This document shows positions 40,752-47,400 of a DNA stretch of 64,000 bases, in pieces. Position 1 is the stretch's first letter. Each line of letters starts with the position of its first letter. Source of the stretch: Hyphochytrium catenoides (taxonomy: Eukaryota; Protista; Hyphochytriomycota); NCBI GenBank assembly GCA_900088475.1, contig FLMG01000368.1, forward strand, positions 1 to 64,000. Direction: 5' to 3'. Made by a program: the position numbers and the translations under genes. Below the pieces are notes generated by a model, which worked only from the letters and a program-made list of their open reading frames with translations, was not told the origin of the DNA and did no database searches.

Positions 40752-41951
40752 ATGCAGCTTCTGTCAGACTCCGGCTCCAAGGAAAGCTTGCCAGCACCGG
40801 ACCTAGCAACAGAGGAAGTGTCGCAGATCAGCATGGAAGTAGAGGCATCAAGCAGAAAGAGGAGGGCCTCAGACCTAGAGAGTGAAGAAGGTGACACAGG
40901 AGAGAGTGACAGCCCTCCAACAAAGCTAAAGAGGGCGAGTGCCATGCAGCCGGTGCATAGGGGAGCACTTCAGCAGCTGCAGATCAAGACTAAAACAAAG
41001 GGCAAATCGAAGGAAAAGGGGTTTTCGACTGGCCGCTGGACAGAAGAAGAGCATGCTCTCTTCTTAGAGGGTCTGAAGAGATTCCCTTACAGAGCCTGGA
41101 AGAAGATTGCCACCCTCATCGAGACTCGGACGGTTGTCCAGATCCGCACTCACGCACAGAAGTACTATCAGAAGCTGGCAAAAGAGCAGGCACAGCGCCA
41201 AGCTCAGGGTGCTATAGATCAAAGGTCTTGTCCTTCTCCAGCTGAAAGCACCTTTCAGGGTTCCGAGACCGCCAAAGGGGCAGATGCTGTCTCCTCAAAT
41301 GAAGTTGATGTCGCAGGTCAGGCAATTCTACGAGGGAACGAGCAGTATTCAACGAGAAGACGGAATCTTCCGGCTCTCGCAGGTAAAGAGTCGAGTCAAG
41401 GTCCTGCCCTAAGATTCTCCACGCGCCTTCGCGCAGCAGCGGCAGCAGCTTCTGCGGAGCAGAAAGCAAATACCAGCCCTCCAACAGAAGCTTTCCCAAA
41501 GGTGCCATCGATAACTATCGACACCAGAATGGAAAAGGGCTTTGATGAAGGTAGCCCCACGGGCGTTCAGGACTTCTTCCTGAGTTTCTCCGACACCGCC
41601 AGGCCTGAGGAAGACTCTTCTCTACCAGAAGTGTTTGAAGATTTCCAAGATCCTCTGGATTGGCTTGATACAGTCAGTCGCGCAAGTTGCACGAGCACGA
41701 CTTTGTCTGCGTCTCCTGTTGAGGCAGAAGCCGAGACGGACGCAAACGACAGCGCATTTTGCGACTCTTCATCCTCGCCATCTTCGCCCATGTCCTCCCA
41801 GTTTGTTTGCTCCCCAGTCCCAGAGTCACCTCTCTGTTCTGACTTCTTTCCGGCCTTGCAGTTTGATGCTCTACCAGACATTGAGCCTCTAGTAGCCCAG
41901 GACTTCTCAGGCTTCGCTGATACTTTCCCAGCTGAGACACTTTTATACTGA
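40752..41951 (+). CDS. Single-repeat Myb-related transcription factor, SHAQKYF class (intronless ORF)
   Basis: It has GRWTEEEHALFLEGLKRF...WKKIATLIETRTVVQIRTHAQKYYQKL and an acidic, Ser-rich C-terminus. Confidence 0.92.
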   Translation: MQLLSDSGSKESLPAPDLATEEVSQISMEVEASSRKRRASDLESEEGDTGESDSPPTKLKRASAMQPVHRGALQQLQIKTKTKGKSKEKGFSTGRWTEEEHALFLEGLKRFPYRAWKKIATLIETRTVVQIRTHAQKYYQKLAKEQAQRQAQGAIDQRSCPSPAESTFQGSETAKGADAVSSNEVDVAGQAILRGNEQYSTRRRNLPALAGKESSQGPALRFSTRLRAAAAAASAEQKANTSPPTEAFPKVPSITIDTRMEKGFDEGSPTGVQDFFLSFSDTARPEEDSSLPEVFEDFQDPLDWLDTVSRASCTSTTLSASPVEAEAETDANDSAFCDSSSSPSSPMSSQFVCSPVPESPLCSDFFPALQFDALPDIEPLVAQDFSGFADTFPAETLLY

Positions 41952-42467: not shown

Positions 42468-43731
42468 TTACTTGTGCAAGAACCAATCACAGCCCTTTCC
42501 AAGGAACTCGGCTACTCGCTCTAAACCAACCTGGTCCTTCACGTTGAAGCCATTGAACTGCGTCGACGAACGACTGGCGTCAGTATGGCAGACAGTTCGC
42601 GGAACGGGAAGATCGACCCATGACCCCAGGTGGTTCTTACCTCCGGACAGTCAATATCTAGGACGGCTACAACGTTCCCTTCAGCATCTTTGATAGGGAC
42701 AACCACTTCTGACTTGGAAGCCGAATCGCAGGCGATGTGACCGGGGAACTTGTTCACGTCATAGACAAGCTACGCAGCGAAGAGCCAGGCGTGCGGCAAG
42801 TAAGCAGAGACGTGGGAGAGGACCTAGTGGGGACAAGGAAAGGAAGACATCTTCTCGAAGACTCCATACCTGCGAGGCCTTTGACTTTGCTGCTGTGCCA
42901 CAAACTCCACTTCCGAACTTTATCCGTTTACATGCTGGCTTGCCTTGGAATGGTCCAAGAACCAACAGTTTTTCAGTAACATTGGGGAGCTTCCTTACGT
43001 AGTAAAAGCCAGTCCAGTTCGTGGCTTTCTCGCCTCGCGCAGCCCTCAGGGCGTGCCAGACAGCAGCAGCTACATTGGCTGTGTTGGCAATCATGTCACG
43101 CTCCCCCTTCATGACTCTTTGAACCTCCGTCATAAGCGCTTCGTAATCTACCGGAGCTCGACTTTCTACTTGGAGCAAGAGACATGTAAGCTATCCGGAG
43201 GACCACTAGGGAAAGCATCCTCTGTATGCACCTGCTTCCTCGTTGGCTACTGGCTCCTTAGCTATGGCTGCGAATTTCCTAATCTTCTCCTCTAGCTAAA
43301 GAAAAGGAACAGTCAAGTGTCGTCCGTCACGAGCGCTTCATTTACACTATTAGCAGGTAGAATTGTTCCTACCGCTTTCCAGTCTGAGCCACTCGTCTCG
43401 TCCATTGTCTGGCCATTGCGAAGGATTTTGATGTGGGGAAAGCTCTCAACTCCTAACTCCATCACTTCGTCCTCACCGATGACATCCATATCCATCCATG
43501 CGAATCTCTACGCGTTGGGCCACTGTCAGCTTAAGGGACGCTCCATCTTCCTGGTTCGTGTCTATGTCGCCTTACCGTCTGCTTCAACTCCGCAGCAAGA
43601 GCTTTGAAGGTGCTTAGAAATGGAAAGCTAGCCTTCTCGCATGAGTATACGACACATACGATGACGTAAGACCTCGTTTTAACGCTAGACCGCACCAGGT
43701 CATGATACTCCTCAATCGACTTGAGCTCCAT
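42468..43731 (-). CDS. Thioredoxin-like domain fused to free methionine-R-sulfoxide reductase (fRMsr/MsrC, GAF fold)
   Basis: The Trx-like exons are MELKSIEEYHDL...FKALAAELKQT|RFAWMDMD...ELGVESFPHIKILRNG...GSDWKA|LEEKIRKFA. They join in phase to IANTAN...NWTGFY...LGPFQGKPACKRIKFGSGVCGTAA...DVNKFPGHIACDSASKSEVVVP...VLDIDC. TAA is at 42468-42470. Confidence 0.85.
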
Positions 43732-44428
43732 AACTGTCTGGTTTTAAATCTCTGGCCTACAGAGCTCTAACCCACGAACTAGCGATGTGTTGGGCCCAGC
43801 TGCCTCTCTCCAACCCGCTCTATGGAGACAACGGACTGCCTCTCCTGGCCGGGAGTCATCGGCTGCGAAATGTTCTCAAACGATCGATGACTGACGGTCA
43901 AGGTGATGATCGCTTCTGATCTGAGGATAAAGAGTGTGAGTTCTGATGCCGCCACAAAGCCGCTAACGGAGACGAAGCCAATAGTGGTAAGCGGTTATCA
44001 AACACTGTCTACTGTAGTCATCACAGGATTTATTCCTTTAGTTATCATTGCTTTGCTTTTTATTCAGAATGTACGATACTCCTTCCTCCTCAATGGGCTA
44101 CAGATCAAGAATAGTGTCCGTTTCTCTTCGCGTTGCCACCACCCAAACAGCAGATGGTGGTTCGCTTGTCCTTTCACATCAGAACAGCGGTCCCGGCCTC
44201 CGCCTCTGATTCTTAAGATGTTGACAGCGGCACACTGAAGGCTTCGTGAAGTCTCTGCTCGAAGGCTCCTCTCAGGGACAGACAGCTTCGTCAGCTCATT
44301 GCTCCGAGGCCGCCTGCAGTTAGCTCTTAAGGTCGTCTTCAGTGGAGGTCACAGGTAGTGCGGCTCTCAGGAGTCGTCAGCGGTGAAGGTAGCCAACTCG
44401 ACACAGCGCGGTCACGAAGTGATTTACA

Positions 44429-47400
44429 ATGGGAAAGAAGAAGCATACTGTTGATACCCCCGCGGAGCCTGTAGAGGAGGAGGTGGATCTGAAGGACCAG
44501 AAGAAGAAGAAGAAGAAGGACAAGAAGAAAAAGAAGGACAAGATAAACGATAATGGTGAGGAGTCCGTAGCTGTTGCTAATAAGGATGATTCGGAACAAG
44601 ATGCAGCAGCAGAGAACGGAATGGCAAGCAAAACGAAGAGCAGAAAGGACAGAGAGGAAGATGCCGATGATGATGTCAATGCCACACCCGAGGTTGCTGA
44701 AGATAACAATATGAATGGGACGAACAAGAAGAAGAAGAAGAAGAAGACAAAGAAGGCCACCGAGGGAGATTCCTCTAATAATCCTCCATCCCAATCTCAA
44801 GTGACTGAGGACATGCCTTCCGAAAGGGCTACACACGAATCCCCAGAGGAGGAAATGATGGATGAGTCAGAGACCAAGGCAGAAAAGAAGAAAAAGAAGA
44901 AGGAAAAGAAGAGAAAGGCAGAGACTGCTGATGGTGAAGCAGACGACGACAACCGTAAGGAGCGAAAAAAGGCAAAGAATGGGAACGCCGGGACATCGGA
45001 GGATGGGCCCTACCAGCAGCCTCCGCCGTCCGATAAGTCCTTTAAGAAGGTCAGTTCATGGGTAACGGATCCCTGTTTCCTTTTTGTTCGCTTTCTGTGG
45101 CCTGCAACTTGTCCGTAATTATAGCATAGCATAGTCTCGCCCTAAGGTCCTCTGTCTCTTGCAAAAAGAGGTCTGAAGTAGTCCTCGTCACCTGTATGAG
45201 TGCGCCCAGCGCTAACCCCTCTACGAAATTAGGCCTTCTATGACGAGTCTCCAGCGGTCAAAAAGATGTCAAAGGAGGAGGTCCAGCGTTTTCATAATGA
45301 GAACTGCATCACAGTGGCCGGCAAGAATGCCTACTACCGCCCCATCAAAGAGTTCAAGGATAGCTCTCTGCCTCCTTCCATCGTCTCCTGCTGCGCCAAG
45401 TTTGACAAACCCACCCCGATTCAGGTAGTCCGCAGGACTCTTGGCTCTTCCTCAGCTCATCGACATCCACTTTCTGTATGATCTCTTTTCGTACAATTCT
45501 CTAAATCAAAGCTCTGCTCGTCAGCGACGTCGGTACATACGTTCAAACAACCGATCCTCACATGACTAACAACTCCTTTGCTTCATTAGAGTCAGTGTTG
45601 GCCTATTCTCCTTTCGGGGCGGGATATTATCGGAATTGCAGAGACCGGGTCTGGAAAGACTCTGGCGTTCACACTACCTGCGATTGTCCACATCCTTGAC
45701 CAGCGGCCAGTGACAAAGAAGGCGTCTGGACCTATAATGCTTGTCGTCACACCAACTAGGGAGCTAGCAATGCAAGTCAACGAGGTAAGGGCTGACGATA
45801 CCTCGTCGATTGTGCTCTGTCTTCCTTGCGCTTCAAGGCTCTGCATGCCATCTAGGTACCGGTATCACCTCTGGTACAATTTTGTCCCGCTGTGATCTCC
45901 GTCATCTTACCGTCCTGGTACCGTGTTACAAACGTGGACCATCATGGAGCTCGATAACGGGGAGCTTGCACTTACGAGTACTTTCCAGGTGGTCAGTGAA
46001 GTTGGAGCTGCCAACAAACTGAGAACTGTATGTTTATACGGAGGGGTTCCGAAACACACCCAAAAGCAGGCTTTGAGGGACGGAGTCCACGTCGTGGTGG
46101 CGACTCCTGGAAGGCTGAAGGATCTTGTCGAGGACTCTTCCTGCTCTCTTGCACGAACCACCTATCTCGTATTAGACGAGGCTGATCGGATGCTGGACGG
46201 TATGTTTGCGATCACACGCTGTTCGGGGTTCCTCTATCTTCGTCCTGTACTTTCAGTCCTTCTGCTGGCTTGCACCTTTGACAGACACATCAAGCTCACT
46301 TACTTCCTACCATCTACCTTCACTGCCGTTGTACAACAAATTGTACTTGCGTACGACAGAGGGGTTCGAGAAAGATATCCGTCTAATTATTGGGAAGACC
46401 CACAAAGAGCGACAGATGGTCATGTTTAGTGCGACATGGCCAGAATCTATTCAAGCGTTGGCCAATGAGTTCCTCACTGATGCCGTGAAGGTGACAATCG
46501 GGTCGGATGATCTCTCTGCGAACAAGAGAGTAACACAGATTGTTGAGGTATGTGTGAACAACAAGTACCCTAGATCCTGGGTCCGACCTCCCCAAATTGG
46601 GTTGTCCTTGTTTGCATCTTGCTATTGGGTCAATCCGTTGCTCTAGAAGGACGTAAGGGCTTTCTTCCACTTATTTTTACTACTAGCCCTGACTACCCTA
46701 TCTGCTTTTCTTCCTTGCATTCTTAAGCTACCCCACTTCGTTCATGCTTCGACTCTTCCGAATTCTTCCTACACTTCCTCTCACATCCATCATTCTTGAC
46801 CTTTCTTTTCAACACTAGCTGACCATACGCAAATTGCTCCCATGAAGGTTATTGAGGACCGGCAACGCGACCGAAGGTTGCAAGAGCTCCTGCAAAAGTA
46901 TCATGTCTCCAGAAAAAACCGGGTGCTCATCTTTGTGCTGTACAAGAAAGAGGCTGTAAGGGTGGAGAGGATGCTGCAAGGCAGGGGCTGGAACTGTGTG
47001 GCGATCCACGGAGACAAGAGCCAGCAAGAGAGGACCAGGGCAGTCGAAAAGTTCAAGTCGGGCGAGATTCCTCTCCTCCTGGCTACGGATGTTGCAGCTC
47101 GGGGCTTAGATATCCCAGACGTGGAGCATGTGATCAATTACTCCTTTCCGTTGACAATCGAGGACTATGTGCATAGAATAGGCAGGACAGGGCGAGGAGG
47201 GAAAACGGGCCATTCACATACATTCTTCCATCAAGGAGACAAAGCTCGGGCCGGTGAGAATCTTTTACTTTTGTTATTGTTGTGGGGTATCTTTGTCCAT
47301 CTGGATGTAGTTTCTTCCATTCCCTACAGCTTCCCGCTTTCAATTCTCTAAGCTGTCTCTCGCTTGTTTACTCTTCAGGAGAGCTAGTAAATGTCCTTAG

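Follow-up and report, generated by a model that had tools for sequence, protein, structure and literature searches.

A free methionine-R-sulfoxide reductase joined to a thioredoxin-derived domain in Hyphochytrium catenoides and oomycetes

Organization of the gene

Free methionine-R-sulfoxide reductase (fRMsr) is the textbook case of a stand-alone enzyme that is recycled by free thioredoxin. Here we describe a gene on the minus strand (43731..42468) of a 64,000-nucleotide (nt) stretch of Hyphochytrium catenoides DNA (contig FLMG01000368.1, positions 1 to 64,000, referred to throughout as the window), in which a thioredoxin-like (Trx-like) part precedes an fRMsr. An earlier sequence-only reading of this locus had linked the two parts through GT-AG splicing with matching phases, and this organization is borne out: the gene comprises six exons separated by five GT-AG introns of compatible phases, and arithmetic on the spliced exons gives a coding sequence of 873 nt, that is, 290 codons followed by TAA, with an in-frame stop located 15 nt 5' of the ATG at 43731. 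All of the strings quoted in that reading were recovered in their places (VIVC and YSCEKAS in exon 1, GVESFP in exon 2, PAC and GVCG in exon 4, and HIACD in exon 5).

Exon 1 (43576..43731; this and all following exons and introns are on the minus strand) carries the start of translation and 52 codons counted from the ATG, among them those of Cys26 (43656-43654) in VIVC and of Cys31 (43641-43639) in the S-C-E-K-A segment of YSCEKAS. It is proposed to provide strand 1, helix 1, strand 2 and helix 2, i.e., the N-terminal half of the Trx-like domain, and ends in phase 0 at a GTAAGG donor. Intron 1 (43508..43575, 68 nt), which contains a CTGAC branch-like site, is followed by exon 2 (43373..43507, 45 codons), which would contribute strand 3, helix 3 and strands 4-5 of the thioredoxin fold and harbors the LGV and GVESFP motifs, the latter with the cis-Pro motif SFP (Pro codon 43438-43436). 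Beyond intron 2 (43296..43372, 77 nt), exon 3 (43232..43295, 64 nt, ending in phase 1) encodes the last helix of the thioredoxin fold and the linker, and is the counterpart of helix 99-113 in the model of the relative P0001 described below. Intron 3 (43169..43231, 63 nt) parts the Trx-like portion from the fRMsr. Exon 4 (42870..43168, 299 nt) encodes the N-terminal two thirds of the reductase with two of its Cys, the resolving one in KPAC (42932-42930) and that in GVCG (42902-42900); exon 5 (42641..42769, 43 codons), reached across intron 4 (42770..42869, 100 nt), holds the catalytic Cys of HIACD (42730-42728), the Glu of SEVVVP and the Cys of DIDC (42649-42647); and exon 6 (42468..42557, 29 codons plus TAA), after intron 5 (42558..42640, 83 nt), adds the C-terminal helix of the GAF domain. 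The end of intron 3 (43166-43170, minus strand) additionally forms a tandem acceptor, CAAG followed directly by TAG, whose second AG lies 3 nt downstream; its use would keep the frame and leave one Val fewer at the domain boundary.

The window is eukaryotic in character, with about 50% G+C and short introns, several of which have CTRAC-like branch sites. Every intron of the gene either shifts the frame or contains an in-frame stop, so that splicing is required and read-through would not yield the protein. When codon usage was scored with the eight longest open frames of the window as the training set, each of the six exons had a positive value in the proposed frame (0.13-0.50 per codon; +0.21 for exon 1). 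The other frames scored below zero, and the introns and the upstream region gave lower values than the exons.

The locus could in principle represent two separate genes, a small Trx-like one and a stand-alone fRMsr, joined wrongly in silico, which would agree with the usual stand-alone occurrence of the enzyme; we nevertheless consider this very improbable. The fRMsr exons lack their own start codon: a stop inside intron 3 lies just upstream in the frame of exon 4, no in-frame ATG precedes the core, Met is absent from exon 3, and initiation at the first Met of exon 4 would cut off the N-terminal helix, where the alignment with the yeast enzyme begins at residue 26 of the latter. Conversely, the reading frame of the Trx-like part runs into the splice without a stop. 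A closer relative (L002, a 920-nt genomic contig) holds counterparts of exons 2, 3, 4 and 5 in unchanged order, at 57-81% identity to the window (the exon 3 counterpart being weak, E 0.045) and with introns at places equivalent to introns 2, 3 and 4. Furthermore, the Trx and fRMsr parts of P0001 form one unbroken open reading frame (ORF) of 300 amino acids (aa) on a 1015-nt JGI environmental contig with short flanks, which we take for a transcript, and fused models of about 300 aa are present in more than 10 oomycete genera. Together, these observations indicate that the Trx-like and fRMsr parts belong to a single six-exon gene, as the sequence-only reading had maintained.

The reductase domain

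Searches were run exon by exon, and residues of the complete protein are numbered from the exon lengths. Exon 4 matched the yeast fRMsr YKL069W (1f5m) with an E value of 2.6e-17 and exon 5 matched the same structure with 2.2e-12, the other solved fRMsrs coming next (5hl6, 1vhm, 3mmh, 3ksf and 3rfb); for 1f5m and the first four of these, the E values run from 2.6e-17 to 1e-6. Exons 4-5 and the yeast enzyme have in common the motifs NW.GFY, GPFQGKPAC, GVCG, HIACD, SE.VVP and DIDC. Exon 4 is 69% identical to L002 and 59% to P0001, exon 5 is 81% identical to L002, and exon 6 matches positions 862-933 of the P0001 contig (L003; E 1.2e-5); Pfam and NCBIfam returned weak matches or none for single exons. 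The catalytic Cys of HIAC, in exon 5, aligns with that of yeast HIACD, and the two resolving Cys (KPAC and GVCG), located some 30-40 residues upstream of HIAC in exon 4, are likewise aligned with the yeast enzyme, in keeping with the Cys motifs described for fRMsrs (bioRxiv 10.1101/2021.02.26.433065). In an alignment of 29 family sequences the KPAC, GVCG and HIAC Cys are invariant and the Cys of DxDC is nearly so, and the statement that the enzyme keeps three conserved Cys therefore stands. As judged from its alignments and motifs, the segment encoded by exons 4-6 is a complete GAF-type free Met-R-sulfoxide reductase and is predicted to be catalytically competent.

A thioredoxin-derived N-terminal domain without a dithiol

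The N-terminal domain measures about 120 residues. Exon 2 matches Pfam Thioredoxin (PF00085) with an E value of 9.3e-4 and 19.6 bits, below the cut-off of 23.5, and exon 1 does not match it. Comparison with relatives is more informative: exon 2 aligns with residues 58-98 of P0001 (E 1e-10), with a hidden Markov model (HMM) of the family (E 1.9e-9), and with positions 53-184 of L002 at 57% identity. Its SFP falls on the MPT of thioredoxins, that is, on the cis-Pro loop, and the Pro is invariant in the subgroup of members that can be recognized as Trx. A profile of the N-terminal domain built from these Trx-recognizable members matched thioredoxins of the PDB over their full length (E 1.7e-12), superposing the W-C of the family on the W-C of WCGPC, and the closest relatives found with the family profile are ordinary cytosolic thioredoxins.

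P0001, the best full-length relative, carries a Pfam Thioredoxin match above the cut-off (38.9 bits) in addition to GAF_2, and its AlphaFold (AF2) model (predicted local distance difference test, pLDDT, 87.5) displays the full order of thioredoxin secondary structure elements. Foldseek matched residues 1-105 of this model to thioredoxins (2ypm, TMt 0.81; human Trx, 0.78) and the remainder to fRMsr structures (TMt 0.82-0.89; 1f5m, 0.82). The profile match to thioredoxins and the fit of exon 2 to the Trx domain of P0001 support the earlier assignment of the N-terminal module as thioredoxin-derived.

At the active-site position the window reads Y-S-C-E-K-A, which departs from WCxxC in having no second Cys and in the replacement of the Trp by Ser. 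Counted back from the L of LGV, Cys31 of this segment stands at 39 residues (21 + 18), and the residue that follows the active-site Trp of the orthologues at 39-40; since the spacing of Cys31 equals the W-C spacing of the family, it would occupy the position of the nucleophilic Cys of thioredoxin, making the module monothiol. The sequence-only reading was thus right that YSCEKAS contains no dithiol, and its description of this residue as only a nearby Cys says too little. A selenocysteine at this site was also considered and ruled out, as exon 1 contains no in-frame TGA.

Fused orthologues in the sampled oomycetes

A HMMER search of a library of 1.84 billion proteins with exon 4 yielded 1469 homologues, the window's own protein not being among the library entries. 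Many of the best matches are 250-330 aa long, with the fRMsr part beginning at residue 120-180. Word searches with P0001 recovered orthologues of about 300 aa from Saprolegnia, Achlya, Thraustotheca, Aphanomyces, Phytophthora, Nothophytophthora, Plasmopara, Peronospora and Hyaloperonospora; every oomycete genus sampled has a fused orthologue, and the nearest named relatives of the window protein are oomycetes. These proteins are named 'GAF domain-containing protein' or 'free methionine-R-sulfoxide reductase' (Saprolegnia SDRG_06952 and the Phytophthora 'GAF domain-containing protein' are examples), and their precomputed Pfam annotation consists of GAF only. The 120 matches listed included no oomycete fRMsr of the stand-alone size of about 170 aa, and oomycete entries of lesser length (222-264 aa) have the look of truncated models. 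The window protein displays the pattern of the family, i.e., a Trx-derived N-terminal domain with LGV..P, a linker, and an fRMsr with four conserved Cys.

Whether orthologues had kept a CxxC was a question raised by the sequence-only reading, and the answer is negative: no member of the Trx-like-fRMsr family in the 29-sequence alignment has this motif in its N-terminal domain. The active-site position reads E-W-C-K-K-S in P0001, S-W-C-A-V-K in Saprolegnia and Achlya, and K-W-C-N-V-K in Thraustotheca; in Aphanomyces it is P-W-A-S or P-W-S-A, without Cys, and in the Peronosporales the Cys is absent together with the helix-3/LGV segment, the linker bearing the motif G-W-S-P-D-C-P. In the linker columns of the alignment (A2) this element, G-[WFY]-S-P-D-C-[PS], which places a single Cys between the two domains, is strictly conserved in the thiol-less Peronosporales-type orthologues (Phytophthora, Plasmopara, Peronospora, Hyaloperonospora, P0161, P0163, P0184 and P0189) and absent from the window and the Saprolegniales.

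Sequence identity between groups is 0.20 for the N-terminal domain versus 0.49 for the enzyme domain, and within the Peronosporales 0.58 versus 0.81, which indicates that the N-terminal domain changes at about double the rate of the enzyme domain and is still clearly conserved. The model of the Phytophthora ramorum orthologue (pLDDT 91.2; predicted template modelling score, pTM, 0.88) suggests a fixed packing of the two domains, and its N-terminal domain follows the strand-helix order of the thioredoxin fold minus helix 3. A shape search of the ESM Atlas revealed no large cluster combining Trx and GAF. A metagenome scan with an exon-2 alignment returned a single match (L004), which was rejected as a high-GC bacterial oxidoreductase sharing the string FSWIDMDVIGEDE by chance.

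Phylogeny and glutaredoxin fusions

To place the reductase domain, a maximum-likelihood tree of the fRMsr core was calculated from 36 rows and 109 columns; the rows were chosen by hand from the HMMER and word-search matches, and one was lost because it lacked the anchoring motif. All fRMsr domains fused to a redoxin form one clade (support 100/99), set apart by a long branch from the fungal and bacterial stand-alone enzymes. The clade holds three groups, whose branching order the tree leaves unresolved: the window with L002, the glutaredoxin (Grx)-fused forms including Triparma strigata (98/93), and P0001 with the oomycetes (82/85). The 'Rosetta-stone' logic by which the fusion had originally been read is in line with this tree, in that the fused fRMsr domains form one clade and each is accompanied by a Trx-like domain or a CxxC glutaredoxin.

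The Grx-fRMsr fusions (P0009, P0010, P0014, P0018, P0020, P0191, P0194 from Triparma strigata, and L001:2113-2988) resemble the window protein in having an N-terminal redoxin-fold domain at the equivalent position, a closely related fRMsr and a place in the same clade; P0009, P0010, P0018 and P0020 are environmental sequences. They differ in that their domain is a Pfam Glutaredoxin with CPAC, CAAC, CGAC or CSAC, whereas that of the window is thioredoxin-type and monothiol. We found no description of the Grx-fRMsr fusion in the literature searched, and a word search with the Grx region of Triparma returned only itself.

In one of these genes, the eukaryotic Grx(CPAC)-fRMsr gene of L001 (ENA ERZ27277814 k141_1922295), the codon for the catalytic Cys of HIACD is TGA (2962-2964), and the frame after it is conserved (D-S-A-S-N-S-E, as in P0010) up to a GTAAGT donor. 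The contig yielded neither a selenocysteine insertion sequence (SECIS) in an Rfam search nor the following exon. The gene is a candidate for a selenocysteine-containing fRMsr, a pseudogene or a sequencing error also being possible; such an enzyme is not among 42 algal selenoprotein families (PMC7539508). Other fusions of fRMsr-type GAF domains were encountered as well, namely P0126 (489 aa), in which L-asparaginase II is joined to GAF (Pfam E 1.4e-110), and ESM Atlas clusters combining NUDIX with GAF or histidine phosphatase with GAF, some of the fRMsr-type fusions probably being bacterial.

Proposed role of the N-terminal domain

The roughly 290-residue, two-domain protein of this oomycete-related stramenopile is probably cytosolic. 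By analogy with the yeast and bacterial enzymes, the HIACD Cys would attack free Met-R-sulfoxide to give a sulfenic acid; the Cys of KPAC (or that of GVCG) would then form a disulfide with it, to be reduced by an external thiol reductant. The N-terminal domain would descend from a cytosolic-type thioredoxin that was fused to the fRMsr before the hyphochytrid-like and oomycete lines split; its resolving Cys would have been lost in every known member, the window retaining one Cys at the nucleophilic position. Lacking a dithiol, the domain is not a self-sufficient dithiol donor, and an outside reductant would still be needed because the fused domain could not complete the dithiol-disulfide exchange. 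We propose that it survives as a tightly packed partner that does not turn over and that serves in structure or docking; in the lineages that keep the Cys, including the window, the two domains may also become linked by a short-lived mixed disulfide, which free thioredoxin or glutathione would resolve. As whole lineages keep the domain without any Cys, it most likely serves the family at large in a way other than redox (structure, docking or the shaping of the active-site region), and the loss of the Cys in Aphanomyces and the Peronosporales argues against an obligatory redox role across the family. The most likely arrangement is an active fRMsr fed by external reductants, together with a thioredoxin that has decayed and persists in a structural or docking capacity or as a monothiol relay, and the best explanation of the locus, which we regard as probable, is one nuclear gene for a catalytically competent fRMsr and a decayed Trx partner that acts in structure or docking and whose Cys may form a mixed disulfide.

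Several observations weigh against this explanation. The equivalence of Cys31 to the nucleophilic Cys takes its register from spacing and not from a significant alignment. For the P. ramorum orthologue, the matches listed by two fold searches were all GAF, so that the Trx-like fold of its N-terminal domain was not confirmed. The retention of a single Cys in three lineages (the window, P0001 and the Saprolegniales) points to possible redox activity, which a purely structural remnant underweights. Finally, exon 1 has no detectable homologue, and its call depends on the logic of start and splice sites, on the codon score and on a language-model lead: phmmer against the PDB, BLASTP against P0001 and P0157, and hhalign against the family profile gave nothing significant, and a word search with the 66-aa ORF of exon 1 gave nothing real. 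Such an absence of similarity, whether to the family's N-terminal half or to proteins at large, is what might be expected if exon 1 were mis-called, with another 5' exon in its place or a start at a Met in exon 2 and the YSCEKAS region outside the protein. We see little chance of this. No other ORF piece in 43300-44450 on either strand fitted the family profile in hmmsearch; exon 2 cannot be extended upstream because its acceptor TAG is an in-frame stop, and a start within it would leave half a Trx fold. Upstream of exon 2, exon 1 alone combines an ATG with a phase-0 donor; it also has the codon score of coding sequence and the length that puts Cys31 at the family spacing, and its language-model neighbours all belong to the thioredoxin clan (DIM1 at 0.92 and 0.90, Thioredoxin at 0.90), a lead and not a proof. 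Moreover, the N-terminal half is the most variable and least conserved part of the protein across the family anyway.

With exon 1 accepted, the retained Cys invites two readings in which the N-terminal domain is redox-active. It could be a monothiol relay, Cys31 attacking the sulfenic acid or disulfide of the fRMsr and the fusion speeding up recycling, with the mixed inter-domain disulfide resolved by glutathione/glutaredoxin or by free thioredoxin. The position of the Cys, at the same distance from LGV as in the Saprolegniales, its presence in the window, P0001 and three Saprolegniales genera, and the conserved cis-Pro loop and LGV all fit such a relay, as does the dithiol glutaredoxin at the equivalent place in the sister clade, which makes an N-terminal redox partner the ancestral theme. 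However, Aphanomyces and all Peronosporales have kept the domain without a Cys at the site, the Trp before the Cys is Ser in the window, and in established thioredoxin chemistry a CxxS or CxxA thioredoxin is normally trapped as a mixed disulfide; we hold the relay to be a serious rival, if a somewhat unlikely one. Alternatively, oxidation or glutathionylation of Cys31 (or Cys26) could switch fRMsr activity or partner binding, the domain working as a redox sensor or regulatory lid. A single Cys of exposed type at the thioredoxin active-site position and the fixed packing predicted for the P. ramorum orthologue would suit a sensor, but the Cys is not conserved across the family and nothing sets this proposal apart from the relay, and we judge it improbable. 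A broader version of the proposal for a decayed partner holds that stramenopile fRMsr is permanently coupled to a redoxin domain, present as a dithiol Grx in ochrophyte algae and as a Trx that became first monothiol and then thiol-less in the hyphochytrid/oomycete line, and that the thiol-less Trx has acquired a new non-redox job on which the enzyme depends, for example shaping or gating an active-site flap, or recruiting the real reductant; we consider this rather doubtful.

Relation to known systems

The stand-alone fRMsrs of yeast (YKL069W; 1f5m/3ko6), E. coli (YebR/MsrC; 1vhm), N. meningitidis (3mmh) and S. aureus (3ksf) share with the window enzyme the GAF fold and the GPFQGKPAC, GVCG, HIACD, SE.VVP and DIDC motifs. 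Unlike the window protein with its Trx-derived N-terminal domain, they consist of a single domain (160-195 aa) and depend on free thioredoxin for their recycling, and the window fRMsr falls in the separate, strongly supported clade of fused forms. PilB-type fusions also join a thioredoxin-fold module to a methionine sulfoxide reductase (Msr); in PilB, the active sites of the Msr are regenerated by the Trx-like domain at the N terminus (PMC6316033; PMC6211008). The partner here is, in contrast, an fRMsr of GAF fold rather than MsrA or MsrB, and because the Trx module of the window has no CxxC, the mode of action of the PilB domain is impossible. A further comparison is with thioredoxin-fold proteins that have no CxxC, such as DIM1/TXNL4A, E. 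coli YbbN/CnoX (SxxC) and the N-terminal domain of plant CDSP32, in which the fold has outlived the dithiol and serves binding instead of electron transfer. DIM1 clusters nearest to exon 1 by language model and YbbN is among the fold matches of P0001, with no sign of specific kinship.

Regarding novelty, a survey of fungi reported only single-domain fRMsrs with variable N-terminal extensions (bioRxiv 10.1101/2021.02.26.433065), and we found no description of an fRMsr fused to a thioredoxin or glutaredoxin domain in the full-text literature, a scope that leaves out most subscription papers. The suggestion that the architecture is undescribed stands in the sense that no description was found, and the orthologues in every sampled oomycete genus show that the architecture is not rare. 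The sequence-only reading would have been refuted by an architecture already both widespread and characterized; the Trx-like-fRMsr fusion is widespread in databases, hidden by annotation, and uncharacterized. Standard domain annotation misses the thioredoxin relic in nearly all members of a lineage that includes the Phytophthora and Saprolegnia pathogens. No principle is overturned, because Trx-Msr fusions are already known for MsrA and MsrB. What the family offers is a graded natural series, from CxxC glutaredoxin to monothiol Trx to thiol-less Trx-like domain, which allows one to ask how a fused electron donor persists after donation has ended; if the broader proposal above is correct, the series catches a redox donor in the course of turning into a pseudo-enzyme subunit. 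It also raises the testable question of how the repair of free methionine sulfoxide is fuelled in these organisms.

Surroundings of the gene

Rfam gave no match around the fRMsr gene, and a scan for bacterial promoters and terminators, irrelevant for a eukaryote, stayed at chance level. On one side, the gene converges with a single-exon gene on the plus strand (40752-41951) that encodes a SHAQKYF-type Myb protein (Pfam Myb, E 3.2e-12). On the other, a Lys/Glu-rich ORF without a Pfam match (44429-45118, plus strand) is arranged divergently, about 700 nt upstream of the ATG.

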